Of a stretch of 64,000 bases of DNA, positions 15,001 to 59,265 are shown piece after piece. Under the pieces are notes generated by a model. It did no database searches and was not told the origin of the DNA. It worked only from the letters and a program-made list of their open reading frames with translations. The first letter of the stretch is position 1; every line of letters starts with the position of its first letter. The stretch comes from Trichoplax adhaerens. Lineage: Eukaryota; Animalia; Placozoa. The stretch is from NCBI RefSeq assembly GCF_000150275.1, contig NW_002060947.1, forward strand, positions 2,779,740-2,843,739. Reading direction: 5' to 3'. Made by a program: the position numbers and the translations under genes.

Positions 15001-15700
15001 CTTTCCGGTGAACATTCGCGAGTTACTTTAGAAAATAGACATGAATACGTTGCTAAAGCATTAAATTATCGTTTGCATGAGTTTGATGATCATATTGATG
15101 CCATCAGAGAAGGCATGTCCAAGGTTATACCGGTTCCGTTGTTGTCTTTATTTACTGGACAAGAACTAGAGCGTATGGTTTGTGGAAATCCGGAAATACC
15201 TATAGATTTACTGAAATCGGTATCAACTTTTAAAGGGGTTAAAAGTGATTCACCAATAGTGCAATGGTTCTGGGAAGTATTAGAAGGTTTTTCCAGTTAT
15301 GAGCGTTCGTTATTTCTACGCTTTGTTTGGGGTAGAACCAGATTACCACGTACTATAGCAGACTTTCGTGGTCGTGATTTTGTACTTCAGGTAAAATCTG
15401 GCTATATCAGTGAAACTATGTTATATGAAGTTAATAATTTCCTACTGTTACAATTCAATGTTTTAAATTAATGTTCCTATTCTGTTAACTTAGGTATTAG
15501 ATAAGTATTCTCCACCTGATGATTTCTTGCCAGAATCGTATACGTGCTTCTTCTTACTTAAAATTCCGCGATATTCATCCAAAGAAGTTTTACGTGAAAA
15601 ATTGAAATACGCAATTTACTTTTGTAAGTCTATCGATACTGATGATTACGCAAGAATTGCCCTAAATGTCGACATGACAATGGAAGATGATCTAATTTAA
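74..15700 (+). CDS. HERC2: E3 ubiquitin ligase HERC2, multi-exon, 5'-truncated by the window edge
   Basis: Exons give the HERC2 domain order: cytochrome-b5-like ([14 protein letters not shown], ~600-935), MIB/HERC2 ([13 protein letters not shown]|DGG...[13 protein letters not shown], ~3100-3460), UBA-like (KLMEMGFSK), CPH ([26 protein letters not shown]), ZZ finger (CNQC...[13 protein letters not shown]), DOC/APC10 ([10 protein letters not shown]|HWILLE), two RCC1-like domains ([13 protein letters not shown] repeats, ~8000-10130 and ~12350-13870), and HECT ([19 protein letters not shown]...LPESYTCFF). The last exon ends ...MEDDLI TAA at 15700. Confidence 0.97.
6393..6466 (+). other. GC-AG intron in HERC2 (CPH domain)
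   Basis: The exon ends ...GRVIK (aag|gcatgt) and the next exon resumes LDCDGLHD after ctttag. HERC2 homology (VIK-LD) requires the GC donor. Confidence 0.75.
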
Positions 15701-17753: not shown

Positions 17754-20700
17754 TTATACCAACGAAATATGTTGTACATCTTTTCGAGTAGTACCCATAT
17801 TAAATTGGTGTTGCATTTTTTCAAATAATTCCTGATCTTTTTCCGCATCTCTTTCTGCACCTCTTTCTGTATCACCATGAGTTGGCGTAATTAATAAGTG
17901 GATTTCAGCGGGTAAGCCAGGCGTTTGTTCTACCCCACTACCGGTAATCGATGAATTTTGTACTGTGTACATATTTTCAACACTTTTAGCTAGGAATTGA
18001 GAAGATGCTGTATAGGAAGAGGCTACTGGACTTGTATTTGCTGGTTGTTTATACCTATTTTTTGATTCACAATTAGATGAGGATCTAGCACGTCCGTATT
18101 CACCTTCAAATGGATGATTACTAGATGAATTATATCGATTATTGATTGGATAGGGTGATGCTTTAAAGGCAACATTGAATTGATCGATAGATCGATTCGG
18201 TATGCCTTGTGGCTGACCATTAGGATAATTTTGAGTATGATGACGGCTGAATTCATCTTTTTCAGGTGCAGCTAGTGGTGGTTGATAAATGTTAGGTGAT
18301 GACGTTGGTTGGCGATCTTCATGATGACCCATCGATGATGAAGTAGCAAATTGTATATCTACAGTTTCATTACGATTCCATTGTTCTACATGTGCTATAT
18401 TATTGTAATTGTCATATGTTTGATTACGATACTGGAATGAACTTCGTCGTTGTGGCATATTATTTGGTTTATTTAATGAATTATTTAATGGATATTCCTG
18501 ATAGCTATGATCACGACTAGATCGATGTTTAGTACTCTGGGAGCGAGTAATTCTGCTATTACGATTACTATAGTTGCCATTACTAGTATCAGTATTGACA
18601 GGATCTTGATTTGGCACTTTAGTTTTATGTTGACGTAGTCCGTCTTGTTGATGGAAAGTAGGTATAATGTTTAAATTGTTGCCATTGTTAAAAATATTAT
18701 TGCTACTGGCGATAACAGCGTTATTGGTGTTACTATTGTTATTACTAGATGTTGTTATATTACTATTATTGATAGTACTATTATTATTGTTATTATTAGC
18801 GCTACTATTAATATTGGTATTACTATTAGCGTTTATAAGTTCCAGATTAGTGCCGCGCATAGCTTGCTGTCGCATTCCATCTTGAGAAAGGATATTGCTC
18901 TTGATATCATTACTGTTCTTGATATGGTCTTGATTTGGCGTTCTTATAGTTTGTTGGTGATTGCTATCCTGATGTGATGTTCGTATAGTTTGCTGCCTCA
19001 AACCATCATGATGATGTTGAAATGTTGGCATTATACTTAGATCAACATTATTAACAATGCTACTACTATTGCCATAATCTTGTGTTGGTGTTCGTATTGT
19101 TTGTTGTCGTACACTGTCTTGATTATGAAATGTTGATGTTATATTAACGTCTGCGATACTGCTTCCACCATTGCTATTCATATTAGATTGCTCTTGATTT
19201 GAAACTCGATTGGTTTGTTGATGTAGTCCGTCTTGATGACGAAATGTTGGCATAATACTAATGTCACCAACACTATTTTCACGAGGACGCGAGGGTGATG
19301 CTGGTTCGTGATATTCGTTGCTTCTAGCTGCTAAGATTGTTGATAAGTTGGTGTCACTAACTCGATCACTGTATCGCCGTAATAGTGGATTAGTAGTAGC
19401 AACTGAAGAAGAAGAATTGGGGTAATCTATCTCACTATTGCTACTAGATGACGTATAACTGTTAAGATTTAAGGTAGCTGGATCATTGCCAACTTGCACT
19501 TGCTGTTGATTCAATGTCGTCTTAAGCCTTCGATTTTCACGTATGCTATCATTATTATGATGCTTAGCCGCTTGGAACTGGTTCTCCGATTGGTTACTCT
19601 CGGTATTGCTACCATTAACTGTTGCCTGTGATATCGGTATAATTTCAGTTTGTTTTAGGCCAGCATTGGTTGAAGATGGCAAACTTAAGTTAGATGCCGT
19701 TAGTTCTGATCGGTCAACAGTCTCTTTTGTATTACTATCATCACGTTTCAGTTTCTGTCCCAGATTTAAAGTTTCATTGCTTTCTTTCTCCCTATAGAAT
19801 TTATACCTTAAGTTATAATCTGCGTTTTGATTTATAAGGGACAGAGTATGGTATATAACTTTCCTCAACTAAATTATTGTCGCTGTAATTTGTTAGTATT
19901 TAAACAAAAGATACCACTATATCACTGAGTTTATCTTTATACCTAAGCAATTGCTCTTGTTTCTTGTTTAATAGCTGAACGGCAGCGGCAGGTTCCCTTT
20001 CCAGGAGCGCAAGGAAACTCTTGCGATAGAGATTGGAGGAGATCTGTCGGCAAATATAAGTATATGATTTCGTAAATTCTAACAGTAAAAATTAGTGATT
20101 GCAGCGAATTAGATCAATTTAGAGATTATCGTATCTTAATATAGCTATCTCGTTATTCTGTAAGGAAGAAAGACTACCTCAAATAGAGTAGAATTTAATT
20201 CAATAAGATCTTCAGTTATGCCAATAACTATAGGCGTGTCATCAACACGATCAGCGCTATCGACAGCGAAATCTTGATTAACATTTTTCATCTATTTCAT
20301 GACATAAATTCAATGAAAGTTTATTATTTACATTTAAATCTAAAAATCATATTAAAATATAATATTAGTAAAAATTTAAAGTTTACCTTATGCAAAATAT
20401 TTGGGCCCATAACCTTAGCCAAATTGCTGATATCCATTTTATTTCCTGGTATCTTTAAAGATGGGCATAGAGATATTAGAAAATATTGTATGTAAATAAT
20501 GCAATTTGAATGGCGGAATAAAACTACGATATTATCGAATGGTAGAATGATATTAATATGAATTTTTATTAGAGCTACCTTTTCTCCATCGTTTGTTACG
20601 ATATCATCCGCATTTTTAGCAACATTATTTAGGAATGCCACTAAAGATCTCAAAGTGTCACGATTGGGAATTGGCAGAATACAGCATAATAGCTTTAACG

Positions 20701-38000: not shown

Positions 38001-41000
38001 GTTAACTTCAGAGTCGATTAATTATGGCAGTTAATTTGCGCTCATAGATAGTATTGAAAGGTATTTGCGGCAATTAACAGGACTGTACATATCTTCATTC
38101 AAGTTTGGTACCTGATTAAAGATTCCCAATGTATTACTTAAACAGGAGCGATTTCTTATCCTAAAGTACTTTTAAATAGCTTTATCTACCTTTAGATTGA
38201 TTTTAAACATTTTGACCTTTCTAACTTAAATGTATCTTAAATTTAAGGCTAAACGTTTAGTTTTTAATTTAAATAAAATTAAATACGAAATTATAGAAAT
38301 CGGCTCATGGACGTACATAGAATCTAATTGAATGATATGAAAACGTGCTCTATTTTCCTACATAATTCAATGGATATTTGTATCACATAAGTATTTTGTA
38401 ATTATTTTTAATTGACATATGGTCTTATTATAATAATATACCGTAAAATCTAAATCTATCTACCGCCTGGTTTATATTTCCAGTAAATGATCATAAGCTA
38501 TTAGGTAGACTTAATAGAAATTTTTTTCATCAATTAATTTTATTATTATTATATGAGAAACTTTTTAAAATGCTGAATTTATGAGGCAAACATCGCTCCC
38601 AGAACTCTCGATATTTAGAATAATACATTCTCAAGAGTTAAACAATAGTCATACAGGGTGATTTCGAAAGTATGAAATCAAACTATGCTACACTGAAGCT
38701 AAGACTAAGGCTTGAGACAAATTTGGTGTATTGTGATACTTCTTAATAAGACATACAACCTTCGGGTAATCTTATCTGCGCTACCCTTTATTGTGCTACT
38801 TTTTGAACTTCCTTATAAAAATTTATTTGGACGGTAATTAAATGTTTTCCTAACGTCATAGTAATAAAGTATTGTATATCTAGTATGTTAGTTAATGAAC
38901 GGAATTAATAAGAATTACTAGTTGCCAAACATGAAAATAGTAACAATAATCATTAGATGGCCTTTAAGACATACTTAAAAGCGATAATTAAGTTAATATT
39001 TACGCAAATATCGCAATTCTGAGCAAGGTAAGTGTTGATGATGTTTTGTTCGAAAATTTCACATCCTTAACTTAATTTAGATATTGCTATAGTGAATGAT
39101 GAAATTCTGTATTAACTGAATCAATAATATTGGTAAATTTATGCTTTATCAGCTAATATTATACGCGTAAAATAAAAGTTATATTCTGTGTACACTGTAT
39201 CTCTACAATTTTTGTAACATAGAATACTGGCATATTCTATCGTTCATTAAATTAAATAATTTTATTTCTTTAGTTGTATATACAGCATAAAGTACAATTA
39301 AATTTAATTTTATTATCATTGAGGCAACTAGAACTTTTTAGTCCGAACTGTCATTTGTTAATATACCTAGTATTTATTTACTGTATTAGTATAAATTATA
39401 TACTGAAGATGCTATGCGCAGATATAAATTCGTATCACCTTACATTCAGGAAAATTGCAGCACAACTAACATAGTTGTATCCGATAACTAAAGTAGGGTA
39501 TCGCCTTGAACAGTTTTATTAGTATCTGGTGTAAAGTATATTATACTTCGATATCTCATATTATATATGGGCATGACTTTTGTAGCTGTGTAGGTAATTA
39601 TGATATGTGCATATTTCAGGCACTGATAAGAATGGTAACATGATACTGGGTGCATATGTTAACATATACATAAGCGTATGCTTTAGTATACATTACGCAA
39701 AATTAAAGTTTGGCGCAACGAAGGAAATTTATCGCTATGTAGATGTAAAAGTGTGAGTACGATACGATTATTTTAGAGTGTAAAGAACTATTTTAATTTA
39801 TAAGAAAATGCTAAGCAAAATTTAATATAAGTTCTGATCGGTATACATACCGTAATGTATGAGTAACAAATACCTGCCATTTCAAGGTAATGGAATGCAG
39901 TCTTTTATGTTATTGTTAATCAAGGATTTCTACAAGGAATACAGTATAGTATAAGTCAAACTCGCAAATACATTTTATTATATCACAGTACCTGTATTAC
40001 TATATCGGTGGTTTAAGTATATATCCTCAGAGCTAGTTTCTCTAGATTAGGAGCTCGACAATAAGCGATATCGTATTGTATTTATCAGATAATCTATCAT
40101 TAATAAATTGGACTTTAATGCTCTACGAGCATGCTATATTTTATGTGATAACTAAATTTTCTATGCGTTTTTCATTCTCGTAAAGTGTTTACCTAATGTG
40201 CAATTAAATACGGTACTCGTATGTAACGAGATACGATTTTGACTTTATAACTTTAAAGTTTTTAATTGTATTAATTTAAGAAGTTAAGTGAGGATAATAA
40301 TCCATGACAACGGATTACCTTATCAACATAAACATAGATAAATTTCTACTTCTTTCGAATGCATGGAAACAATGACAATTACGTGTAGTAATATAGATTA
40401 AAAATTTATCAGGTATTCACGTAGCTTAAATGACACTTTTGTATGAGATAAGTGCATCTGTGCTACGTCAAGTTGTTCATGCATATGTAAATACAAGTTC
40501 ATAGTCCATTAACTGCACACAATAATGCAAAGCTTTCGTTGTATGATACTCGATGCGTTATTGATTATTTTATTTATTAATCCATACCTGATCTCAGTTG
40601 ATTTGTAGAAAATTGAACCATTAGAAGTTAATAATTCATATGGAAACATACACTAGCGTGGTATGAAGTTATCTAGACTGTAATGCCGTACCGGTATATT
40701 GCATAAGGTTACCGATTATTATTATAATAGGAAGTTTTACCTGTAAGCGCGTCTTCTGGTGTATATTTCGTCTTGACCTTCATCGATATCAAGCTTAATT
40801 CTACGAAATTTTATACCCGGTGAATTGATACAGGTAAGACTTTACACAGTCTGATTTAGTGTGTCTGAATTGATCAAATAGCTATTTTTTTTTTGTCCCT
40901 ATTACCTACGAATTTGGCTAGCAATGTTTACGGTATGTTGTAGCACTGTAGTTAATTAACCAGTTGCCAAATTGAAACTATATCGAAGATATACCACTGC

Positions 41001-42163
41001 TTAATATCGAAATCATGTTACTTTTGAAGATATGTATCCATTTTTGTTATAAGGCACGATAAAGTGCTGCACAATTAGTACAGTGGTAAATTTTACTTTG
41101 CCTTTATTTGATTTTTATCTACGTTAGATAGTTTTTTACTGTTTTAATATAAAAGATTTAAGTACTAAACAGTGTAATTCGACTGTAGAAAGTGTCAACT
41201 TAATTTGTTTCATGCATATTAAAAGGCACTATTGTAACTATACTTCGGCGAGCTTACTAGGTATGCGCTTAATTAATGGCAACGATTTTTGTAGATCATC
41301 TATAATAATTTCTCTGGAGAGAAAAAATCTGTGATGCAGTAATATTCGTAGATTACGATTATGTCGTGGATTACGTACGAGCAATTATGCGATACTGTAG
41401 TGCTCCATTTATAGTAATCCATGATTTAAATACGTACAGTATACGCTAAACTGCAATAAACGAAGGCACCGAGTGATTGTAAATCACTGATAACATCTAA
41501 TAGCCACAGCGTTAATAGTGTTTTGGCCAGTATCTTCCAATTTGGAGTCAAGTAGGTTCTTGTACGTACATTTGTGATGAGTTTCGCGTTAGGCTATCGA
41601 TGTAAGATTGGATGTTATGTTCGATGAGCTACAGGATATCAGCAGCTGTAGTTATTAATTAATTAATTATTCGTATACTGTATGAATTGAATATGAATTA
41701 GTCGATCCCTCGCTTGTTATACTTCGCGTGCTATACGAGTATACTGTACCAGCTGTACTTATACCTTACTGCGTTTTCATGTTTACAGTAAAGGAATTCT
41801 TTGAGATTTTGAATCCTGATATAGTATAAAACTGGATATGGCACGCTTCTATTCGCAAGCTAATCAGTATAAAGTATCAACTTGTTATTCAATATGCACT
41901 TTATGAACTGTACTGATCTATAGCAATTGTGCTGCATTGACATTCAACTGAATAAGAAATTTTGGGTTGAATCTGTAAAAGTGGGTTGAGAGCTTTACTG
42001 GACGTAGCCATTAGGGTCTATTGACTTATCAATTAATAGTAAAAATCGAGTGATTCGTCTATACATGACGCTCATGAAGTTACTGGCTCGGTATGAATGA
42101 AATGACACACGAATCGAAATTACGAAATTATGAACTCTGTCTCGATTTTCCTGCTAAAGGCTA

Positions 42164-42440
42164 CATACAGTACTGTACTGTAGTGTAAGTGCGTGCTCCG
42201 ATTTGCTACGAGATACCGTAGTGACGGAACTGTACTGTACTGTACTGTATAACCATTGTACTGTACAGTGTACAGTACAGTACAATATAAGCTTATCTAC
42301 AGTACAGTACTGTAAACTGGTGTACAGTACTGTACTGTATGTTACGAATAATCACAGGAATCATACTGTATCATGAGTCTATGTCTTTACTGTCTGATAT
42401 ACAGTATGTACTGTACAGTAGTTAAGAACATACGTACAGT
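42164..42440. repeat. TACAG/CTGTA pentamer array with orientation switches
   Basis: Examples: tacagtactgtactgta, actgtactgtactgtactgta, gtacagtacagtaca, tgtacagtactgtactgta. Confidence 0.9.
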
Positions 42441-42465
42441 ACCCGGTAAGGAGAAGAATTATGGT

Positions 42466-42709
42466 TAAAAGAAAAAGGGAAAGGAACAGGGAACGGTCGT
42501 TCAGTATGATAAAATGAGGGAGCTGACTATTTTACTGGCCATTTTAACTGAACCATATGCGTCAAACGGTAACTGTCCATGGCTGTGAACTTGCCATCCA
42601 AATTGGCCGCTTGATTAATTTTGTTCTCATTACAGTATACTGTATATTTCATTATTTTGCACTAAACGGACAGTAATCGTCCCTCTGTCTTTCTACTGGT
42701 GTAGTCGCT
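42466..42709 (+). mobile_element. Degenerate copy of the MITE-like element at 62385-62689
   Basis: taaaagaaaaagggaaaggaacagggaacggtcgttc...gctgactatttttactggccattttaactg...aaacggtaactgt...tccaaattggccgct aligns collinearly with 62395-62541. The right end ccctctgtctttctactggtgtagtc resembles the right TIR. Confidence 0.7.
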
Positions 42710-42914
42710 CTTAAATAGTGCACGGCTCTAACTTGAGCACTAGCCCCAGGCTAGTGAGGACGAATCTCATGTAAAAGTGGTGTCAATATATTCAGCGTGG
42801 CTATTATTATTAGCTTAATGAATGAATGAAGAGTGTGACCAAAACCACCAATCAGCAACGATTTCGTCGGGTCGTATCGCTCGTATGATCACGACCTTCG
42901 TTCTATTGTTTATA

Positions 42915-43085
42915 CTACTGTAAAGTGAGACTGTACAGTACTGTACTTCAAAATTGACACGTGTACAACATACAAAGTATGTACTGTACACTGTACAATA
43001 CTACAGTACTGTATACTGTACTGTACTGTACAGTACTGTAAAGTCCAGTACACACTACGATACAATGTACTGTAAAGTACAGTAT
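42915..43085. repeat. TACAG/CTGTA pentamer array upstream of the NRPS-like gene
   Basis: actgtacagtactgtac, tacagtactgtatactgtactgtactgtacagtactgta. Confidence 0.9.
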
Positions 43086-43982
43086 TTTAACCTTTAAAGA
43101 TAGTTTACCAATGGCAGCAGCAAGTTGCAGATCGTTTTGTATCCGCATGGTCAAAACCTGAAGCAAATCCCACCATAAAGTACTTTGCTTTCGGCATCAA
43201 CTGTCTTGTGTGGTAGTGGTATATTTTACGAAAAATACGCTAATAAAAAGGAACAGTGGGACTCGCATAAATAGGTATAAAATTGTAATTTAATGCTAAT
43301 ATTTATTATAGAATTTGAAAGATTGCAAACAGACACTATTCGAATGGAGATTAACAAGGGTGGCAACTAATGAAACTGATATGATTCCTTAGCAACTTAC
43401 TTAATCCGATTTCTTACATGTGAATGTTGATTTGCATGTAGGATAATATAATCGGTTCAAAATTTTTTCATTATCCTAACATATTTCTTATTAGAGGACT
43501 ACGTATTTAGATATTCTGACAAGTAGCAATTAGCGTGTACGATTTTGATTTTAGCAGAATCCTGAATGGAATAAATTAGTCTCTAGAATGAAATATATGT
43601 GTAGATCGACATAAGCGATTGAGAGAGTACAATACACTAGTAGATTGGTTCAGAATACGCATACTGAAAAGGATGAAATATCTGCACTTTCACGCATAAG
43701 TAGAATGATCGCGCTTAGCTAATATCAAAATATTAATCTATATGCTACAGTTTGGCTCATTTCATGCAAGAAAGTACTATGTAAATCCAATCTACTCGTA
43801 TCGCACATTGTTGTCCTTATGCATTTGCGTATGCATTAGTAATGTACAGTATTATGCACCCTGCTAGAAGTTGTTTATATTATTGTAAATCTCCATACCT
43901 GACTAATTATAAATATAAAATAATTGTCGTGTTCTATATGTTTCGTTTATTTGAATGCGCTCTCGTTAATTAGGTACAGAAA

Positions 43983-46900
43983 ATGAATAGTCAGCTAAAA
44001 TATTGTTTGCATGAAATATTTCGGCGCCAAGCTAGCCGAACACCCGATGCCATTGCTGTCGTCGACCCGGATAACAATAAATCTATGACCTTCAAGGAAT
44101 TAGATATGGCTAGTGAAGTCTTAGCGACTAATTTACGACATAAAGGTATCAAAGTTGACTCTATTGGAGGAATTTACATGGATAAATGCTTAGAATACGT
44201 TATAGCATATATTGCCATCTTAAAAGCTGGTGGAGCTTATCTCCCTCTCGATGTTTCCTATCCACCTGCTCTGTTGAAAATGGTTTTGGAGGACGCAGAG
44301 CCTGTTGCTGTCATCACAACACAAAGTTGGGCTTCGTTATTACCTTCTGAGTTAGAGATCATCGTATTAGATGATGGTTGGCAAAATATTTTGGAACAAG
44401 AAAATACTGCTAGAGGTGACGTTGAACAAATTAAAAACTCTTTGGACGATTTAGCCTATGTGGTTTATTCATCTGGTACAACCGGTAAACCAAAAGGTTA
44501 GTGCTATGCTATGTACGAGTATTATGTGCACTTGTGGCTAAGTTATTGACTATTATATTATTTAGAGTAATTCTAAAACTGTACATTATAAAGTATACAG
44601 TAGTCTTCACAAGAGACGACGAACGTCAAGGGGAGTTTATCCAAGAAAGATTGAAATAATTAAATATTTCTTGGATTTGCTAGATCTAGCCAGCTGTAGT
44701 GATGACGGCTAAAATACATCATGGCTGGGATTAAAGGCATTGTAAATACTGAAATAGCATGCCTCCGGTGTCTTATATATTGTACTAATAGTGTGCATAT
44801 ATGCGTTCAGCCACGTGCATTCACTTTACACTGTAAATTCGGCTGCAATCATGGTTACTGTTAGCGAATAATTTATTTAGCGTGTTATTACTGTACTCCA
44901 ACATGGATAGGCAATTGGCATGTACAGTACTGTATTAGATAATTTAGATCCACTATATCGCTGTGATGTATCAGTGAAGATCATTGAATCGAATCGAATG
45001 TTAAATACTGTCAGTATCATGTTATAATGCTATAGCTTAGCTTAAAAATTATCAAACTAGCAATGGCCGGATATCAATAAATAAATTACATTGATAGAGC
45101 ATATAGTCACTGCACAATATGGCTGCTAGTGTATAGTTATTATGGTAAAATTTATAATTGTATTTACAGTAATGTTACTCGATTTATGTAATAATTCATG
45201 CACTGTACTGAGCAAACTTGTTACAGTTATTTGTACGGCACTCATCAAATCATTCTAGCGGTTTATACGTCGTGTAACTACTTAAGAATAGTTAGATTAT
45301 CGAGATAGAAGAATTAATTGATGGTGCACACGATTGGTTATCGTTCATTTCTAATGTGATTGAAATTTAGCTATAAATCCATAATAATGCTAAAATTGTT
45401 ATGATCGATTGATTAGTCAATCCTAGGATTGACTAACGTATCGGCCAATCCTAGTCTGTTCAATACGAATCAGTAATGTAATCTGTCAATTTCGGGTTTT
45501 GACATAGCTGTTATATTTACGTTCTCCATGCGGAATATATCTAAAATTAGAGGACTCTTAATTAGTTGCTACCACTCCTCGTTTTATAATATTATGATGC
45601 AGTTTATTGGTGTCTTCGCGTTATGGTGCGCGATAATTAAAATGTTTTCGCATGTATTTATTTCAAGTTATAAATTTGTGAATTATATATACTGTACTTA
45701 TAGGCATTTGCTGTCCACATCGCGGAGCTGTCTTTTCCTATACCAAAAGATTCTTATTTTATCCGTTTGAAGATAATGATCGGGTTGCATGCAACGTTTT
45801 TTTTGTTTGGGAGTTGCTCAGACCTTTACTGAAAGGTATCACTCTGTATATTATTCCAAACGCAATAATATACGATCCGGTACTACTATCTCAGTTTATC
45901 TATAAGCACAGAATTACCCGTATCCTTTTCACACCATCATTACTTGAGGCAATGTTGGATTGTAGTGGTATTGACTTTAAAAAAACATTATCCAGTTTAC
46001 GAATCATCATGTTGTGCGGTGAGGTCGTTGCTACGGCTCTTCGGAATCGGTGTGTACGTGTTTTACCGAATGCGAAGCTAGTAAATCTCTATAGTACTTC
46101 GGAATCACACGATATGGCGATGGCTGAACTATCAGGACCATATGGTGCAATTGATAAAAACCGTAAATTTTGTCCTATTGGAAAGCCATACGACGAAGTC
46201 CATGTACTAATCTTAGATGATGATTTAAAGCAGCAGCCGGTTGGAGTTTATGGAGAGGTAGGATACTATAACGAAGCGTTCACTGATAAATTAAGGACTC
46301 ATTACAGTATTAGACGACAAATATGAATTCTACTGTTATTAAATTTTGTGTTATATGATTGAATATCTATAAAATAAAATCTTGCTTATCCGGTTAATAA
46401 AATCAATTATTTCTATGAAAGATATATGTTGGGGGCCCAACATTAGCACGTGGTTATCTTAAACGTCCAGAATTAAATGCTAAGAGATTTATTAAGACCC
46501 CAGATTATCTATCAGCTTACGGTCCGATCCTATATCGTGCTGGTGATTGGGGATGCTTGTTACCTGATGGTCAATTGGAAATTGGTGGACGATGCGACAC
46601 AATGGTTAAAGTTAGGGGTTACAGTATCGAATTGCAGGTGCGTAGTTAATTTCGTTTATGATAATATAGATTCTAATCATATTTATCTGTTTTTGAACTC
46701 TCTCAATAATTGTTACTACAGATATTTGATAAATTGAAAAATTACTAATATTTCATTAACAATTAATTATTATAATTAATGTAGGCGGTGGAAGCGGCTT
46801 TGTTGGAGTTAGATAAAGTGAATGCCGCTGTTGTAATTCCGCAGGGGGAAGAGGGTTCTGATAAATTTTTAGTAGCCTATGTTGTTCCGGAAGGGAAGGT

Positions 46901-49900
46901 ATAGCAGCTTTATTAAAATCACTGTACGATATGTAAACATTTTTATCTGGATCAATTGTATTACAAGCTAATATCACCGATTTTTCAATAGTTTAGTTGG
47001 TTTTTACTTTATTTCCGATTATAAATTTATTAGACTACCAGAAAGGAAATCCGAGAAGCTCTGAAAAAGCGTTTACCTTACTTTATGATTCCGTCTTATT
47101 TTGTTTTTCTTGCTAGGTATATGGAATATTGTTATCTTATTTTATTAGCAATCTAATAATTTTATTATTATGATACATTAATACCTTTTGTAATAACTGT
47201 ACTAGTGTACCGTTGTTACCAGCTTCCGCTAAATTAGACAAAAAGCAGTTACCATTGATAGATCCTTTAAGGGCTGTTCCTAACGATGATGAAGATAGTG
47301 TTCCGAGAACAGAAACAGAAAGAATTATGGCTAAAATGTGGTGCGATGTGTTACAGTTGAAAGCTGTTGATATTGATGAAAGTTTCTTCGATCTTGGAGG
47401 GTAAAAGAATCCTATATACTATAACACTGCTTACTTGCTAGTACTAATGAAGTTTGCTGTAAGATTGGTCGAATGTATATATTCATAATCATAGGCTATT
47501 AAAAGAGTATAAGATCAAGTAATGCAATTTATTAATTGGCTACTTTACGATCATTTATTGTAACTTTTCTAGTCATTCTCTTATGGCAACGAAATTAATT
47601 ACATCGATTAACGATCGGTTTAAAACCAAGCTGAGTGTCCGTGATTTGTTTACGTATAATACTGTTATAAGTATGGCCTCTTACGTTGAAACAGAATTAG
47701 GTATATCGAGTGACCTAAGTGGTAGGCAAACGTGAGTCGAATAATTTTATGAACAGATTACAATGTTTACAGTAGTGTTTGGATCATAATCTGATTTTAA
47801 TATTGATCAATTGTTACGGCGACAGTCCTCGTGAAGTAGATATCAGCAGCTTGGAGTCTGAAGTTGAACGTTATGATGATACAGTATCTGGGTATGAACA
47901 GTATATGTGGAGAAATATGAATTTTGATTACGGTATTAAATTTAGGGGTGTCTACATCATTAAATTACTCATAGATGAGATTTGCTTTACGCCATGTAGA
48001 TTGGATATACAATTGCGGGCTTTTTGGCATTCATTACGCTTTTCGAATAGATGGTATCATGGAAGTGTCTTACTAACCGGGGTCACTGGCTTCCTTGGAG
48101 CATACTTGTTGAAGGAAATATTAGCAACTACAGAGGTCTAGTTGTGCTTATTAATAATAGCTTACTTCATCATCTTATCGCAATTAAAAATTTGTTTAAA
48201 GCTTCCCAATTAAATATGCATTATTATTTTATTGTAGGTTGACGTATATTGTATAGTGCGAGAAGTACCCGATAGCAGCGGTAAGGATCGCGTAAGAGCT
48301 AATCTTGTAAGTTATGGTTTGCTACCGGCTGATCGTAATGATTCAAGTGGCGCTAACCAAGATTTCGAAAATGCATTTTCTAAAAGAGTGTATGCAATCA
48401 CCGGTAAATAATAATATAATTATAATCTTAGTGTAGTTGTTGTGTTATATTGCTCCATAACAGTATAAAGTGTGCTTAGTCCATACTGTATAGTATATCA
48501 CTCAAGTAAGGTTTTCTATGTTACATGTCTTTATGCGATCTAAATTCATGTAGGCGATATAACTTTACGAAATCTTGGAATGACAGAGGAGGAATTTATC
48601 TTTTTGAGTTATGAGGTGAGTAATATTTTGTGAAGCACATTATAAATCCATACATGTATCCAATTTGTTGACTGATTTTGGATTAAATATAAGATGATAG
48701 TTTACTTCTTTATTGCTGACAGGTTGATTACGTTATACACGCTGGTGCTGTGGTTAATTTAATATACCCTTATAAAGTTAGTAATAAAATCGTGCTTTGA
48801 TAAACTAGTAACATACCATGATCCGTACGAAAGAGGATCTACGTATTAGGAATTCGATTTTGTAAATCCTTATCGTAAAGGTAGCTGATATTACTGATTA
48901 CTTTCTTAGATGTTACGATCTGCAAATGTAGTTGGTACGAAAAATATCATTAAATTTGCTTCAGTTGGTAAGATAAAGCCTCTACATCATATTAGGTAAG
49001 GATAGGTTGTTCGTTCGTAGCTAAAACCTGATGACAATTGTAAAGTTGCATTACAGTTTAGGATATACTTAGGCAGGCTTTTAACAGAATCTGTTATATT
49101 ATTTCAGTACAAATGGTATATTTCCGAGAGGAAAACACGGGTGCTCTGAAAATGATGACATGATACAATTTGCTAATCGTCTTACTGATGGGTAACTGAA
49201 TCTAACCTCTGTAAAGAATGAATTTCATCTTTATTTGTTTTTATTGGAATATCGCTAACCTATATTTTTTGTTAAATCATAAATTACTGTAGATATGCGC
49301 AATCAAAATGGGTAGCAGAGCAACTCGTGCTGCGGGCACGTAACAGAGGACTCCCAGTTGTTATTTACCGGCCAGGTAAACGTATTAGTTTTTTAACTGA
49401 CGACTTTGTTAATTTTAACCTTTAAATTTATTCTATCTCAAAGGAAATCTATCTGGAGATAGAGATACAGGTGCTTGGAATCCTTCAGACTTTATTTTCT
49501 TGATGCTAAAAGCTTGCGTTGGTGCTAGATGTGCACCAAATATCGATTGGCAGTTAGAGATGACACCGGTAGATTTTGCGAGCGAAGCTATTGTCCGTTG
49601 TACCCAGGTGATATAGCTTTATCTATATTACTATACGTCGCTTAACGTTACGATACAGGGGTTTACATATTTTATTATTACTTAGACAGTAGTTACAGAT
49701 ATACGAACTAGGATAGCATGCTTTTTCAAAGTATGCAAATGTGCATTAAATTAAACTTTATGAATTACAGCGGGTTGTTGATATAGAATATCTGTGAATA
49801 TACTAAAATATACACGCAGATTGTTCATTCTTCATAAAGATATTATCAGTAGCAACTTATTTACAATTATATATTATTCATGACTAGAATCTCACTAATT

Positions 49901-52216
49901 GCGTTGGGCGAATTTACCATATAACCAATAGAAATACGGTATCTTTCCGGTATGGTCTTAGTATTATATACCTGTTTTATATATTAAAGTAAAGATTAAT
50001 TCAATATGGGCAATGTAGTTACGATCAGTTGTAGAACTTTTGATTGTACGCGTGTTTATAGATGAGAACTATGTATTACTCTTACAGTTTGGTTTGCGAT
50101 ACCTTAAGCCAATTTGGTTGCACATTAAAATCTGTTGATTACGAAGAATGGTTTCAAATGTAAGGGATCGAAATACAAGTATTTCCATAAATTTGATTAT
50201 CTTTTCGCAGAAGTGATCAATTATATTATTATCAATGTAATTAATGTAACAGACTTCATAACGATTCTGCTTCGGATGCTGAATTAAAGGTTGGAAAATT
50301 ACTGGAGACGTTAGTAGGGTGAGCTATTGTGAAGATATATATACGTATAACATAAAGTGGCGTGCTTTTGCCAAGTCAGATTCACAAAGTTTACGTTTAA
50401 ACATACTGACTTTATATGGAATTATCTCCTGTTTTAAATAATAGTACTTGATAAACGCTGTATATTTTTCAGCAATTATTCTGTTTTATATCTTTTAGGA
50501 ATGATATGTCTTTCTTTGGAAATTCCAACACATTCGACAACTCCATCTTTACCGATCAATTGACAAAGTTTGGTCTTACTTATCCGAAAATTGATAAAGA
50601 CCTAATTGAAACCTACTCAAAATATCTGGAGTGTCTTAGGAGTACTAAAATGATTTCTGAAGAGGGTACAGTATACACTAAGTGTTTATTTTTTGATTAA
50701 TGTTGAGAATTTATGGGTTTTAATAATAAAGAAAGACCGCTTGCATTACAGAATTACAGGAGGTAGCTAGTATCAGCAGAGCATCAGGTATGATATGATA
50801 TTTAAACGACCTCCTTTCTTTATGCCCAAAAATATTAATATTAATCATTACTACAATTTAAAATAGAGAATCAACCATTACGTGGTCAAGTAGCAGTAAT
50901 AACAGGCGCCTCAAGTGGAATAGGAGCAACTATTGCTAAACATTTAGCTCTTGCAGGAGCTTCCGTTGCATTAGGAGCTAGGCGAATGGACAGGTTGGAT
51001 ATCTTTCATGCGACCATAAGATTTGCTTATAACTTATTTTCCATGTTTAAAGCTTCTAAGCTATTGTGATTACTATTATTTAAATATATTTACTTAAGGC
51101 TTAAGTCCCTTTGTCAAGAAATTAGATCGGAGGGTGGTAAAGCTATTGGCGTACCAACGGATGTAACCAAAAAAGTTGAGGTAAAGATGATGTCACATAA
51201 AATAGTTTTCTACTTTAAAATGATAACATACTGTATACACAGGGTTGTCCGCTACATTTACTTATTGCTTACGGCGACGGCCTGGTTGAACCTTAGGTAG
51301 AGAAATTAGTGAATACAGCGAGGGAAGTTTTCGGAGAAGTTACTATACTTGTCAACAACGCTGGTTGTATGTACTACACCGAAATGAAGAATGCTCATAT
51401 AAATGAATGGGAAAGGCAAATCGACGTAAACTGCAAGGTAATTTATAATGAGTCACGATATCTGCAAAATATACTTTAACTTAAAATTTGAAGCGTTAAG
51501 TAGTGCTAGTTAATAACTAAAAATTACCGTTACGTACGCTACAGGGTATGTTATACGGAATAAGCAACGTTTTAAGCAGAATGTTAGCAAATGGTTGTGG
51601 CCATATTGTTAACATTTCATCAGATGCTGGTAGAAAGGTAAAAAGTTAATAACACCTAGGTAGCAGACATCGAAGAGAATCTAGACATTTATATATATTT
51701 ATATTAGGTATTTCCTGGTCTAACGGTTTACTCCGGCACGAAATTCTTTGTTGAAGCCATTTCGCAAGGTGTACGATTAGAAACCGCCGGTTCTGGTGTA
51801 AGAGTTACAAGTATTCAACCTGGTACGTTAATTAGATACAATTGGAATATTTTAATTATTATATCTAAAATGTTTGAAGAATTCCTGCTATGCTTATTGT
51901 TGTATAGGTGATGTATCAACGGAAATTCTAACTTACGGTGTAGATGCTGAAGTAAGTACATATATTTGTGCATTTATTGCATATATGAGCGTATATTAGC
52001 ATTTTTTACAAATTTATTTAGAACTACCAAAAATGATTTTATTCAATGGTTAATGAAATGTTATGATTTAAGGCTCGAAAGAAATACGGTGGCAGTGCAG
52101 AATCGAAAATATTACGACCCTTGGACATAGCTAATGCTGTGGTATATGCTTTAACACAACCAAGTTTTGTTGCTGTGAATGAGATACTTATTGAACCTGC
52201 AGATGTACCATGTTAG
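43983..52216 (+). CDS. NRPS-like A-T-R-R enzyme (adenylation, thiolation, thioester reductase, C-terminal SDR); glycine betaine reductase ATRR-like; about 27-28 exons
   Basis: A domain: LKAGGAYLPLD, YVVYSSGTTGKPKG, DRVACNVFFVWELLRPL, NLYSTSESH, YRAGDWG, GRCDTMVKVRGYSIEL. T domain: DESFFDLGG|HSL (phosphopantetheine Ser). R1: VLLTGVTGFLGAYLL, VIHAGAVVNLIYPY, G|YAQSKWVAE, YRPG. R2 (SDR): VAVITGASSGIG, LVNNAG, NISSDAGRK, VYSGTKF. The stop TAG ends at 52216. The exon junctions I checked keep frame. Confidence 0.92.
45413..45436. repeat. Perfect 24-bp palindrome in an intron of the ATRR-like gene
   Basis: ttagtcaatcct|aggattgactaa, with a partial third copy caatcctag at ~45446-45454. Confidence 0.9.
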
Positions 52217-53274
52217 GATATCGCTGATATGCATTATCGTAATTTCTGTAAATTCCTGGATACTTATTTTATATCTCATTAGGCTTAGCTTTATTTCGTG
52301 GCCTTAAAAGCTGTGTGCTCGATATTAATGTTATTAAATGACCTATCCTATGTAGTAGCTATATAATACCTAGTTATAATTAAGGGGAATTTACCAAAAT
52401 AACCTTAAAGTGATAGTTACTTCTTTTTACGGCTTTATAATCTTGTTTTTAAATTATAAGATATGGTATTTATACTATAATGATAATTAACCTTCTTTTT
52501 GATTTGCCGGATAATTGCCCGTCTTATTCGTTATTATTCATCGTGCAATAATTTAGGTCGCTTAGGAGTCGTTCAGTTTTTATTAACTTTTCAATTGTAC
52601 TTATGATGCTCTAGCCATTTCCTATCCATGATCTTAATAAACTGGACGCACGTTATTAATTATAGATATATTAGATAGATATCGAAATCGGCACTTTCGT
52701 GAAATTGATTTGCTTTTGGACTTTTTAATCTTTGAATTTACGTAATTCAGGCGTTTTTATTCCGGAAAGATTACATTCGATACTCTACGAGCATTCAGCA
52801 ATAATGTTTATATTTATAAGCAAACTTTTCAAAGTGCCTCAATCGCAAATACAAATGCGAGCGTATGACATTAGTGCCTTATACAATTAAATGTACTACA
52901 GTACAAGATCTAAAATGAAAATCTTTGACATAACAAGTAGGGCAAAAACGAAAGAATGTAATTTTTACAAACAAGAACAGATGTATACGGAAACATAGAT
53001 CAAAATGACATAAGTTACATTTACCATTCTGTCATTGTTGTATCTATACAGTGCAAACAGAGCACGGTCTTCTAGAAGAGTGTATAAGTAATAATGCAAA
53101 ATCAAAAATTTCTTCAAAGACCATACTGTAGACTGGGTATAGATTGTATCAACTATTCGCAAATATTTCTGAAGATGAATGCAGAATTAAATAATACAGG
53201 ATAAACATCATCAGAAAACAGATAATTTATGAGTCAAGTTATCAGATTAAATTCGTATTATTCCAGTGATAGCT

Positions 53275-56200
53275 TTAAGTCTTATCCGAGTGACTGGTGT
53301 CGTCCTCTTTCAAGTTTACCATAGAATTTTCTTTATCCTCATTCAATTCTGGATTATCACTTGAAACTTCAGCTTTATCTGATGCAGATACAGTGTTGTC
53401 CGACTTACTATCCTCATCTATTTCTGGCGAAAGTCCTTTCGTTGTGGTCTCTGACTGATTTCTCTCCATAGTATTCGCATCCTGTCCTTGATTACCTTCC
53501 ATAACAGAACTTTTATCTGTTGTTGAGCTCATCTGATGGTCACCATCAGGACTTCTTACATTGTGAACATCAACTCGGCATGTTATGGAGTCATCAGATG
53601 ATTTCTGTAACTCCTCGGTAGTAGACATGACACCACTGGCTAATTTTTGAATATTTTGCTCAGCTCTTCGTCTTATTTCAGCTCGTCGTTTATCTTCATC
53701 ATAGAGCTCTTTTGTAGGACCGTCAACAGAATTAACAGAGGAATGACGATCAATTTCTGAATCGCCTGATACACCATCGTCTTCAGAGGAGTCGTCCGGG
53801 GTGACATAAACAACTTCCAAAAGAATTTCACCATCTGCTTTTGATAAAATATGAACAGCTTCAACATGACTGGAATGTTTCAAAGACATGCCATTCACTG
53901 ATAGGATTGCATCGCCAATATATAAACCTTTACAACGTTCAGCTGGTGTTTGTTTATGGATCTCTGATATTAAAATGGGAACCCCATATTCTCTACCTCC
54001 CTATCATCAAATGTAGTCGTAGTTTTAGGCTACTAATAGGTACGATAGATATATCGTCAAAGCTGTTTACTTTAGGATATTAACCAACTATTTACGCGAT
54101 TATTAAAGTTTATTGACATTTTATGTCAATCCTTTATTATTTTTGATAAGTGATACAATGGCCCTTATATCATGCAATGTCATAGCTTTAGTTGTTTAGG
54201 CAATAATTCAAAATTAAATATTAGAGTACTTACCGTAATAGAAATCCCTAATCCTTCAGAACTATCCTTAAAAATTTGGACAGTTCTTATTTGGCCAATT
54301 CCTCTACGCTTTTGATGCTTAGGTACTTTAACTGGTGTTGGAGATTGAACCGGCTTATCGCTAGATTGGTTTCGCATTTTGCAAGTTTTGACGACAGTTT
54401 TATGCCGATGGAGATTGATTTCAGCCTCCAGTTGATTCCATAAAGCTTCATGTTGAGCGCCTTTCATATCTCTACCTAGTAATTGTAATTGCTGAACTCT
54501 AAAAGTAGTTATCAAACAAGGCAATACAATAAATATTCGACGTAAGTGTATAAGCTTTAAGACGAAAGTGAGTGATAGATTGAAGCAAGCAACAGTCCAT
54601 GATTCTTTAGGTTCGCGTAATGAATTTACAAGTAATGAAGAGTAAGAAACTAATTACAGAAATATTAGCTAACCTCCCAGCCAATTCTTTATCTAGATAT
54701 TTGGTAGCCAATCTAGCAGCATATAACTCGCTTTGTAAATAATCGATATGATATCTTAAGTCTACATTTTCTTTCCTAAGTAATTCGACTTCGGCTCGTA
54801 AGCGAGACTCTCGATAGGCACTCTGGCGAGATTGTTCTATCTCCAAAGCCTATAAAATTGATAATATTAATACGTGTGTCAATCAGTAAATGGCAATAAC
54901 GAAAACATCTAGCTAGAATATCAATCCTAGTCAAAGTAATTTTATCCAACCTGGTAGAGAAGTGTATATGACAGCAGATATTAATAATTGATAGTTCGAA
55001 TGTATAAAGTTAGATCTATAGTACATAAGTAGCGGAGATAACATAACTCATTCACATTCTTACGGGACTCACAAGTTTAGATTTATTCTTATCACCATCG
55101 ATGGGTTGATTGTCGGAATTTGCCCCATCCTGATCAGGATGTAACCGCACCAATTGATTGTGTAGTTCTTTTTCTAGAGCACATTTTGCAGCTCTTTCAT
55201 CACAAATATCGGCTCGTAAACTGATAAGTTGTGCCTAGTTCAGGGTCACGTTAAATATTTTATAAAAATTTTATTATAGAACATGATTAACCATATTAGT
55301 TTTCTAATCTTAGCAAAAAGACATTATCGCATATTCTTGTAGAAATATTTACGGCATGACTAAATGAGGCGAATATTACAGTTGATTTCGTTCTAAGTAA
55401 TGATTATCGGTTATCTAAATGACTATATTAGATCGAAACTCGATTGAATGAGAATAAATGGACGTCTCACCGTTTAATAGACTACACAATAAAATTATCA
55501 GTGAATGTAGGTTCTAAATTACTGTCAGTATAGTATTCAAAGCGTAAGGTTGCTATATGGAGCAGCCTGGAACGATAATTAAACGTTATTTTTATTTATA
55601 ACTTTAACATTGAACTATTCAGATATATTCAAGATGTAACATGTGGTCGCAAATTCGTATGTAACGCCATTTTCAGAAGAGAGCAGTTTCAAATGGTTAG
55701 AATCGGTACGAGAGTATCAATACACATTTGAATCATTTGTGCTCAAATATGAAATTTTGTGTATAATGCTGTAATGGCTGCACATGCTTATTTATTATGT
55801 TGTAGGTAAGTGATGAACTGCCAAAGTAGACAAATTATTATTGTACTCGGATTGACTTGAAGCAACTAAACAAAATTTCTTGACATTCACTCACTGAAAT
55901 TTTATCCAAGTACCTGTGTGGTTACAAAGTACAATACAGTACACACTATTATTAATGACACTAACGGAAAGAAAAATTCTTGGTCATAGACAAAATTTTA
56001 TATTGTACGAATTTACACTGTACAGTATATAAGTTTAATACTTGGTTACTAGTTAATGCAATTTATAACACTAGCACTAAAAGCGTAAATTTTCATAATG
56101 TTAACAGATATACAGGTGGATTTCTATCCAATAATTTTCTTCGCAGTGTACTGTGCGATCTATCTTTAACAGGAATTATATATCATACATTGTATTCCTC

Positions 56201-57154: not shown

Positions 57155-57365
57155 TCTACACTGTACAGTGTACAGTCTAGAGTGTACACGGAGTCTACAG
57201 TACAGCACAGTACTGTAGGGTTGAGTACAGTACAGTACAGTACAGTACTGTACACTGTACAGTAGTTGAATAAATTTAATTTAATATCCTACCGATTCTA
57301 CAGTACAGTACAGTGTACAGTATAAATACTGCTAAGAGTACAGTATGTTGTACAGTACTGTACAA
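57155..57365. repeat. TACAG/CTGTA array immediately upstream of the GOPC ATG
   Basis: agtacagtacagtacagtacagtactgtacactgtacagta and tacagtacagtacagtgtacagta. Confidence 0.92.
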
Positions 57366-57562
57366 AATTTCGCTTTGTATTGTAGTAGATTTTGTCTTTT
57401 AAACTGATATTTTATGATGGCAATTACGAGTAGCGTAATTCTATCAACTTGTATCAAAAATTTGCTTTCTAGCTACATAATGGTATAAAGTATAGTAATT
57501 TCACGTTAGTTTCAGTAATATTTTTTCCTTTTTTCGGAGTCTGAAAAGAAAATAAACACTTC

Positions 57563-57736
57563 GTACTGTACAGTGTACAGTACAATATCCCCAGTCCTCT
57601 GGGCTGTGGCGAGGGCTAAAGTCTGTTGTTAATAACTGTACAGTACTGTACTGGAGATAACAGTACAGTACAGTACTGTACTGTACTGTACGTACAGTTT
57701 GGTAGTCTAAAGACGTATTGTACTGTACTGTACAGT
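57563..57736. repeat. TACAG/CTGTA array in the GOPC/LicD divergent intergenic region
   Basis: cagtacagtacagtactgtactgtactgtacgtacag, which is near-palindromic. Confidence 0.92.
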
Positions 57737-58120: not shown

Positions 58121-58593
58121 CGAAAATTTACCAACGTTGCTACAGCTTCCACTGTTGTGTCCATTGACTTAACACTACATTCTGTGTAACATAGTTAATG
58201 AGTTTTAGCAAATATCGAGTTGGAGATTGTAGCCATGTTGTAGCATATATTAAAATGATAAGCTGCATACTAACTGCTATACGTGTATCCTTATTAAATC
58301 AAGTTTAGATTTGACTTCTGCAATATATATTGGGCTAGATGGTCGGGTTACATACCAACTACGCTGGATAGCTGATCTCTGCATAATTTATGTATATAAT
58401 TAATATTAATTATACCTGGAATAAAGTACGTACGTACAGTCACAGTCGCCACAAATTTAGGCGCCCTTATATCATTGCAAGAAAGGTTAAATTTTTTTAA
58501 TGTTGCAACATTAGGCCTCATCGATGTTTTAGTTCTATTAAGAATCGTGACCTACTTATTATACTCTACAGGTCATTGCGTTGTCACTTTATA

Positions 58594-59265
58594 ATGCATT
58601 TCAAATTTACTTACTTTTTAAAGTTTGTTTGCGCGATAACTTTAGTTACATTAACAATTTTACTCTATTATAAGTTAAATGTTCATAATTACTCATGGTA
58701 TCACAACAGAAACATCAAACATCCATGCAAAATTGCTGAAAAGGATATGAAAGCGATGATCGACTTGTTAGGAGGAATTCATCGGACTTTACAGACTCTA
58801 AATGTGACACACTTTTTAATATATGGTACTTTGATAGGCGCTATTAGATATGGAAAAATTTTACCGTGGGACAATGATCTTGATATAGGTGTGCGATGGA
58901 AGGATATTTCACGTTATAGCAATGCACAGTTAACTCTAGCCTTTGCAAAAGAGTCTATTACCACTAAATATTGGTATAAGAACGGTTTATATAGATTACG
59001 AAAAGGTCAATTTGCTCGCGCTGATATAATGATTTTTGACGACTACTATGGTAATGGAGTAATGACAAGAATTGGCATCGAATCGTATTATGGCTGGATT
59101 AATTACAGAAGATATCATGTTTTTCCAGCAAGATTCCTTTTATTGCCGTTACCTACTGTAAATATTGCTGGTGTCAACATATCTATTCCGAGGGAAGGGA
59201 AGACGATAATAAAGTTATTGTACCCTGACGATCATTGGAAGGAGGTGAAACCATTCGGTTGCTGA
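58594..59265 (+). CDS. LicD/fukutin-related nucleotidyltransferase-fold protein, type II membrane, single coding exon (223 aa)
   Basis: N-terminal TM segment FVCAITLVTLTILLYY; LicD signature FLIYGTLIGAIRYGKILPWDNDLDIG; DIMIF strand; LLPLPTVNIAGVNISIP. The ATG is at 58594, just after a likely 5'-UTR acceptor (ctctacag|, 58571). Confidence 0.88.
   Translation: MHFKFTYFLKFVCAITLVTLTILLYYKLNVHNYSWYHNRNIKHPCKIAEKDMKAMIDLLGGIHRTLQTLNVTHFLIYGTLIGAIRYGKILPWDNDLDIGVRWKDISRYSNAQLTLAFAKESITTKYWYKNGLYRLRKGQFARADIMIFDDYYGNGVMTRIGIESYYGWINYRRYHVFPARFLLLPLPTVNIAGVNISIPREGKTIIKLLYPDDHWKEVKPFGC

Follow-up and report, generated by a model that had tools for sequence, protein, structure and literature searches.

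ATRR of Aspergillus nidulans is a rigorously characterised reductase of glycine betaine (Hai, Huang and Tang 2019, bioRxiv 10.1101/559534 / PNAS) in which an adenylation domain (A) and a thiolation domain (T) are followed by two reductase domains, R1 and R2; mutagenesis of the R1 and R2 tyrosines assigned formation of the aldehyde to R1 and of the alcohol to R2 (bioRxiv 10.1101/559534). In the nematode Meloidogyne incognita, MiATRR relieves betaine toxicity in yeast, its RNA interference phenotype is rescued by choline, and betaine and choline act oppositely (PMC11050029). In the diatom Phaeodactylum tricornutum, PtNRPS1, an A-T-R1-R2 protein treated as a homologue of the Aspergillus enzyme, was purified from diatoms and reported to convert L-tryptophan to tryptophanol (PMC13194791). 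Here we describe a gene of this architecture in the placozoan Trichoplax adhaerens, located at positions 43983-52216 on the forward strand of a 64,000-nucleotide stretch of genomic DNA (the window; C1410:2779740-2843739 in the assembly), to which all coordinates below refer unless stated otherwise. Judging from its sequence, the gene is a real, intact and single-copy orthologue of ATRR, and we put at about 0.6 the probability that its product reduces glycine betaine to choline via the A-T-R1-R2 mechanism.

Gene model, family and age of the gene

Full-length analyses were done on the public protein P0193, i.e., GenBank RDD46798.1 from Trichoplax sp. H2. Its mapping onto the window, with 0 mismatches, resolves the gene into 28 exons separated by 27 GT-AG introns, with the ATG at 43983 and a TAG stop that ends at 52216. 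The coding sequence of 3885 nt including the stop specifies 1294 amino acids and its reading frame is open across 28 of 28 exons; intron 1 measures 1207 nt and the other introns 68-280 nt. A preliminary description of the locus had given both end coordinates exactly and had recognised one spliced gene, but its count of about 27 exons corresponds to the introns. The Trichoplax product is identical to RDD46798.1, whose GenBank label, "linear gramicidin synthase subunit D", is misleading.

Exon-by-exon Pfam searches find AMP-binding, AMP-binding_C, PP-binding, NAD_binding_4 and adh_short in this order on the forward strand. These matches, the colinear 28-exon map and the Pfam matches on P0193 agree on one A-T-R1-R2 polypeptide in which R2 is a short-chain dehydrogenase/reductase (SDR) that resembles YdfG, so that the architecture proposed earlier does come from one spliced gene. 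The adenylation motifs are intact (A3 SGTTGKPKG, A7 YRAGD, A8 GRCDTMVKVRG and the A10 lysine K503) and the thiolation domain keeps its phosphopantetheine serine, S561, at a GG/HSL site that is split by intron 6, as had been noticed, with exon 6 ending at 47400 and exon 7 starting at 47573. Both reductases retain their NADPH and catalytic motifs, namely TGVTGFLG (GxxGxxG) and Y831/K835 in R1, and TGASSGIG (TGxxxGxG), NNAG and Y1202/K1206 in R2.

The adenylation, thiolation and R1 parts occur at one locus only in the genome (105.6 Mb, 1414 contigs), and only the generic SDR part has paralogues elsewhere, which are distant (26-32% identity). In comparison with the corresponding locus of Trichoplax sp. 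H2 (L010), the exons contain 3 substitutions, all synonymous, and the introns 16 substitutions and 3 indel columns; these numbers are small and agree with purifying selection.

With the starfish orthologue (P0007) as query, proteins of 1260-1320 amino acids with the same four domains were found in echinoderms, hemichordates, cnidarians, molluscs, annelids, nemerteans, a brachiopod, tunicates, a flatworm, an acoel, hemimetabolous insects and nematodes, and several protists also carry A-T-R-R proteins. RefSeq names the Haliotis rufescens and Nematostella vectensis proteins 'glycine betaine reductase ATRR(-like)', and unnamed orthologues occur in echinoderms, hemichordates, tunicates, molluscs, annelids, nemerteans and hemimetabolous insects. 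The earlier remark that ATRR-like genes are known in some invertebrates is borne out by the 2019 paper, the nematode study, a mention in molluscs and the RefSeq names. The family is thus already annotated in other invertebrates and the Trichoplax gene is not a new kind of finding; what the present analysis adds is the exact gene model, the comparison of the substrate pocket and introns that speak for an origin in ancestral metazoans. When a representative library was searched with exon 2, most matches were multimodular nonribosomal peptide synthetases (NRPSs), accompanied by the first full-length orthologues. Fungal ATRRs (one, from Exophiala, so named) were found via P0311, which was itself recognised by its pocket residues; word searches with a starfish and a diatom query had reached neither these proteins nor PtNRPS1.

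Phylogenetic trees were rooted on two TE-A-T-R proteins (P0040 and P0065) and an A-T-R protein with an N-terminal extension (P0020), with Lys2, carboxylic acid reductases (CARs), Ebony and PtNRPS1 left out of the sample. The A-T-R-R proteins form one clade with support 100, in which the fungi constitute a long-stemmed clade of their own whose sister group is formed by the animals and protists together (support 97-99). The assignment to the ATRR family made in the preliminary description therefore holds, as the Trichoplax protein groups with fungal ATRR and apart from the outgroups. Within the clade it falls among the non-nematode animals, and in the larger tree beside the cnidarians without firm resolution; since animal monophyly is recovered but poorly supported (SH-aLRT 20 in IQ-TREE), we do not claim its position within the animals as resolved. 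The protein shares the same four domains with the Haliotis, Nematostella and other invertebrate orthologues and is at most 54% identical to them, the highest value being that to a crinoid.

Some members of the tree deserve separate mention. The ichthyosporean proteins from Creolimax (P0299) and Sphaeroforma (P0301) group with stramenopiles, at 55-57% identity to a diatom sequence, and not with animals; this placement could reflect transfer between protists or old paralogy. The annelid Capitella has two additional A-T-R copies (P0014 and P0260) that lack the second reductase and are sisters of its full-length ATRR, one of them with the altered pocket I-F-Y-M-I-C-M-D-V.

To compare intron positions, four orthologues were mapped to their own genomic loci and placed in one alignment, where introns were matched by column and phase. 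The jellyfish Rhopilema and the coral Oculina each have 25 of the 27 Trichoplax introns, the starfish Asterias 16 of 27 and the annelid Capitella 15 of 27. For one further Trichoplax intron, the others have an intron of the same phase no more than 3 alignment columns away, and one, directly before the 36-nt exon 21, is private with respect to the four animals compared. Since the common introns occur in all four domains and flank the R1-R2 linker on both sides, the fusion and the gene structure predate the split between placozoans, cnidarians and bilaterians. A metatranscriptome contig from the coral Acropora palmata (L007) holds an uninterrupted open reading frame of 1293 amino acids, and a fused mRNA therefore exists in a cnidarian; searches for exact copies of the proteins from Acropora millepora and Ptychodera gave no match. 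The intron comparison with other animals, one of the checks that the preliminary description had named, points to an old animal gene and not to contamination or recent transfer, and it much strengthens that description's case for a long-resident gene.

Substrate pocket, proposed reaction and alternatives

In the A. nidulans enzyme, F201, W204 and W270 form a cation-pi cage around the substrate, E304 supplies the counter-charge, and the aspartate D235 is lost (bioRxiv 10.1101/559534). The fungal protein P0311 carries F201, W204, W270 and E304 at exactly those numbers, and alignment with it identifies the Trichoplax equivalents as V203 at the D235 site, F204, W207, M274 for W270 and D308 for E304. 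At positions 235, 236, 239, 278, 299, 301, 322, 330 and 331 in PheA numbering, the code reads V-F-W-L-M-C-L-D-M in Trichoplax, V/I-F-W-L-x-C-L-D-V in animals and protists and V-F-W-L-W-N-C-E-I in fungi. The 10-position pocket mapping behind these codes reproduces the five differences from the fungal code that the nematode paper describes, together with one site that varies between His and Ile.

The features common to the Trichoplax and Aspergillus proteins include the order of the domains, a similar length (about 1275-1290 amino acids in the fetched fungal orthologues), loss of Asp235, the motif NVFF(V/I)WE with the Phe and Trp of the cage, an acidic residue at position 330, and the catalytic tyrosines and NADPH glycine motifs of R1 and R2. 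The aspartate that would bind an alpha-amino group is replaced by V or I in 127 of the 127 members that cover the position, and at the counter-charge site, where fungi have Glu, 126 of the 128 members from animals and protists have Asp. In contrast to the fungal enzyme, Trichoplax has Met in place of W270, Asp in place of E304, and C, L and M at positions 301, 322 and 331 where the fungi have N, C and I, so that 4 of the 9 code positions match and 5 differ; its gene also has 27 introns. MiATRR belongs to the animal clade and has the same architecture, and its pocket, V-F-W-L-(H/I)-C-L-D-V, differs from that of Trichoplax at positions 299 and 331; the in vivo evidence is on the nematode side. 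PtNRPS1 shows the same A4 motif and acidic site, according to the residues N212, F214, F215, W217 and E319 given in the text of its description (PMC13194791). Position 299 is Trp in 64 of 128 members and otherwise I, V, L, H, T, M or C, and about half of the invertebrate orthologues keep Trp there; the residue switches even within echinoderms, and the nematode enzymes with a betaine/choline phenotype are among those with a residue other than Trp. To judge from these residues, the third aromatic of the cage is dispensable in this clade and animals have a fixed variant of the pocket seen in fungi.

Pockets of the ATRR type (V-F-W-L-x-N-D-D-V or V-F-W-L-W-C-L-D-V/A) also occur in other architectures. 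Among these are the outgroup proteins P0040, P0065 and P0020 and a TE-A-T-KS-AT-KR-T hybrid synthase of about 2400 amino acids (P0025), whose adenylation domain is in the starter module and whose relatives (P0062, P0069 and others) match it in length and in the position of that domain. This distribution is a hint of a broader group of enzymes acting on cationic acids by activating them.

The reaction that we propose would begin with the binding of a small carboxylate whose head group is cationic, most probably glycine betaine, by the adenylation domain, where F204 and W207 would provide cation-pi contacts and D308 the charge, and with its adenylation by ATP. The acyl group would then be moved onto the phosphopantetheine arm at S561, the arm having first been installed by a host transferase of the AASDHPPT type. 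R1, using NADPH, would release betaine aldehyde, which the fused R2 would reduce with a second NADPH to choline. We infer each of these chemical steps, and most of all which acid is the substrate, for a protein whose domain architecture, intact motifs and family, like the structure and age of its gene, are shown by the analyses above. The general chemistry of the family, in which an acid becomes an alcohol by way of a thioester and an aldehyde, is well supported because of the functional work in fungi, a nematode and a diatom, and glycine betaine as the substrate in animals is probable but not certain.

Exon-level six-frame matches in the genome include AASDHPPT_N exons on contig C1379, one PEMT exon, two GMC-oxidoreductase exons, which could belong to a choline dehydrogenase, and two exons with S-methyltransferase domains. 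At this level the matches agree with an ordinary network of choline and betaine metabolism, in which ATRR would supply the reverse step. An intronless open reading frame of 263 amino acids with an ACPS phosphopantetheinyl transferase domain was also found on a 1-kb contig (L001, C78:223-1014). This contig may be bacterial DNA in the assembly, and we regard the AASDHPPT_N exons as the better candidate for the host transferase.

A number of observations weigh against the reading with glycine betaine and choline. Four pocket positions in animals and protists differ fixedly from the fungal code, in addition to the variable one; the third aromatic of the cage is absent from Trichoplax, and Val takes its place in a second placozoan fragment; and M309 at position 331 is found in Trichoplax and otherwise only in that same fragment, which keeps D308 as well. 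Support for MiATRR is in vivo only (PMC11050029), and the in vitro characterisation of an ATRR is that of the fungal enzyme. Betaine is not among the substrates reported for PtNRPS1, for which tryptophan is the claimed one (PMC13194791), and the fusion in Trichoplax was read from genomic DNA and the H2 gene model. Most of these points would suit an enzyme that carries out the same two-NADPH reduction of an acid to an alcohol but whose physiological acid is not glycine betaine; another small onium acid (dimethylglycine, dimethylsulfonioacetate, beta-alanine betaine or dimethylsulfoniopropionate) or, as in the diatom claim, an aromatic amino acid could take its place. The presence of the pocket type in TE-A-T-R and TE-A-T-KS-AT-KR-T proteins can be read in the same sense. 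However, the triad of Phe, Trp and an acidic residue and the loss of Asp235 fit a cationic substrate that is not an alpha-amino acid, and 8 of the 9 pocket positions hardly vary among animals and protists, the nematodes with their betaine/choline-linked phenotype included. The diatom study, for its part, reports no test of betaine, and in its hydroxamate assay tryptophan came out as a poor substrate (PMC13194791). We consider a different physiological acid rather unlikely.

The other explanations concern the protein itself. It is very improbable that exons 22-28 form a separate SDR gene, or that the locus is a decaying pseudogene or a contaminant, so that no A-T-R-R protein is made. Such a view could appeal to the fact that the gene was read from DNA and to the models of some relatives that are devoid of R2 (e.g., the two Capitella paralogues and isoform X2 of Nematostella), but the open frame, its canonical splice sites and its perfect match to the H2 model, which is independent, the introns that flank the R1-R2 linker in common with cnidarians, the whole reading frame in the coral contig, the exclusively synonymous differences from H2 in the exons as against those in the introns, and the ordinary animal genes on the flanks all speak against it. 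Still less credible is a Lys2-type alpha-aminoadipate reductase or a CAR-type enzyme, even though these have the A-T-R core in common with the Trichoplax protein and GenBank labels a protist relative from Hondaea 'L-2-aminoadipate reductase'. A second reductase is fused to the core, the alpha-amino-binding Asp is absent (V203), and identity to the fungal ATRR P0311 is 41% over 1220 aligned positions. In the PDB search, which found no ATRR structure, the adenylation domain matches LgrA and other NRPS modules best, and none of the 47 matches of exon 2 is a CAR adenylation domain. R1 matches the terminal reductase of MxaA (PDB 4U7W) with an E value of 8e-76 as compared to 1e-20 for CAR reductases (PDB 5MSP and others); these enzymes have the thioester-reductase fold in common with R1, but they lack a fused second SDR and come from polyketide synthase/NRPS assembly lines or A-T-R CARs. 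R2 is closest to YdfG-type NADPH aldehyde reductases, including clavaldehyde dehydrogenase and sulfoacetaldehyde reductase. In Ebony the A-T unit is followed by an amine-selecting or N-acetyltransferase-like domain, and in AASDH (ACSF4-U26) by PQQ-type repeats. Neither feature is present in the Trichoplax protein, whose C-terminal domains are NAD_binding_4 and adh_short.

Exon map and surroundings

All exons are on the forward strand, and their limits and residue ranges follow from the protein-to-genome map; further evidence is given in brackets. The adenylation domain starts in exon 1 (43983..44496, residues 1-172; AMP-binding 8e-38), which holds the start codon, the N-terminal half of the domain and the A3 motif SGTTGKPKG, and continues in exon 2 (45704..46257, residues 172-356; AMP-binding 2e-19) with the adenylation core and, by pocket mapping, V203, F204, W207, L246, M274, C276, L300, D308 and M309. 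Motifs A6-A8 (GEIYVGG, YRAGD and GRCDTMVKVRG) are in exon 3 (46422..46637, residues 357-428), and AMP-binding_C occupies exon 4 (46785..46898, residues 429-466; 1.8e-4 on the exon and 1.6e-9 in P0193) and exon 5 (47034..47116, residues 467-494; Pfam on P0193). Exon 6 (47206..47400, residues 494-559; motif and Pfam on P0193) comprises the A10 lysine K503 and the start of the thiolation domain up to GG. The rest of that domain with S561 (GGHS) is in exon 7 (47573..47731, residues 559-612; PP-binding 1.4e-8 and motif), and exon 8 (47826..47891, residues 612-634) encodes the T-R1 linker.

R1 begins in exon 9 (48000..48135, residues 634-679; NAD_binding_4 and the NADPH motif TGVTGFLG) and extends through exons 10 (48238..48403, residues 680-735) and 11 (48554..48615, residues 735-755), both with Pfam on P0193, exons 12 (48723..48776, residues 756-773) and 13 (48910..48995, residues 774-802), both with NAD_binding_4, and exon 14 (49108..49191, residues 802-830). 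The catalytic Y831-x3-K835 (YAQSK) is in exon 15 (49293..49375, residues 830-858; NAD_binding_4 7e-9 and motif), and the NAD_binding_4 region ends in exon 16 (49444..49607, residues 858-912; Pfam). The C-terminal subdomain of R1 is divided among exons 17 (49888..49949, residues 913-933), 18 (50088..50159, residues 933-957) and 19 (50253..50318, residues 957-979), and exon 20 (50499..50665, residues 979-1035) contains the end of R1 and part of the R1-R2 linker; for these four exons the further evidence is the PDB match to the MxaA reductase domain (residues 656-1020). The linker continues in the micro-exon 21 (50752..50787, 36 nt, residues 1035-1047), which the intron comparison shows to be preceded by the Trichoplax-private intron. 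R2 starts in exon 22 (50867..50993, residues 1047-1089; adh_short 6e-8 and the NADPH motif TGASSGIG) and proceeds through exon 23 (51099..51180, residues 1089-1116; Pfam on P0193), exon 24 with the NNAG motif (51297..51437, residues 1117-1163; adh_short 3e-8), exon 25 (51545..51637, residues 1164-1194; adh_short), exon 26 with the catalytic Y1202-x3-K1206 (YSGTK; 51708..51822, residues 1195-1233; adh_short 2e-6 and motif) and exon 27 (51908..51951, residues 1233-1247) to exon 28 (52073..52216, residues 1248-1294 and the TAG stop).

The upstream neighbour is the end of a HERC-type gene with RCC1 and HECT domains (13565-15471). Conserved synteny can be ruled out, as Trichoplax has HERC-type and LicD genes next to ATRR, the coral PPAT and PAICS, and Capitella a DHHC gene; fungal ATRR was likewise reported to be without a conserved gene neighbourhood (bioRxiv 10.1101/559534). 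The LicD-family gene is a single-exon open reading frame of 229 amino acids at 58576-59265 on the forward strand (Pfam 1.3e-10), 6.4 kb downstream of the ATRR gene. LicD enzymes are phosphocholine or ribitol-phosphate transferases, and the adjacency is probably due to chance because it is not seen in the coral or Capitella. Arrays of the pentamer TACAG/CTGTA lie at 42229-42339 and 42976-43052, 0.9-1.7 kb upstream of the start codon, and another at 57157-57695. An uninterrupted open reading frame of 704 amino acids at 17754-19868 on the reverse strand, which has no Pfam match, is unusual in an intron-rich genome. An Rfam scan of positions 40000-56000 gave no matches.

Significance for choline metabolism in animals

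Membranes and methyl metabolism depend on choline, which animals are usually said only to oxidise to betaine. An ancient and widely kept ATRR suggests that many invertebrates, down to one of the simplest animals, can run the reverse route, and can do so with a single enzyme that spends ATP and two NADPH. Recent horizontal acquisition, a question that has been raised for animal NRPS-like genes, is settled for this family by the matching introns; the gene was not acquired recently. The practical gain is modest and consists of the correction of a misleading GenBank name, a well-defined gene model and a set of pocket residues for mutagenesis. Trichoplax is small and culturable and has few cell types, which makes it a convenient animal for testing the betaine-to-choline route.

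We also put forward, tentatively and with somewhat less than even confidence, the broader proposal that placozoans, cnidarians and bilaterians inherited a multi-intron ATRR from their common ancestor, that it provided early marine animals with a betaine-choline couple that was reversible, and that choline dependence elsewhere is a secondary loss. In a variant of this proposal, the placozoan Met/Met pocket would have shifted the enzyme toward a different onium acid. Vertebrates appear to lack an ATRR gene. If the proposal is true, early animals would have made choline from an abundant osmolyte, and the lineages without the gene would have become dependent on choline from the diet or made by PEMT.

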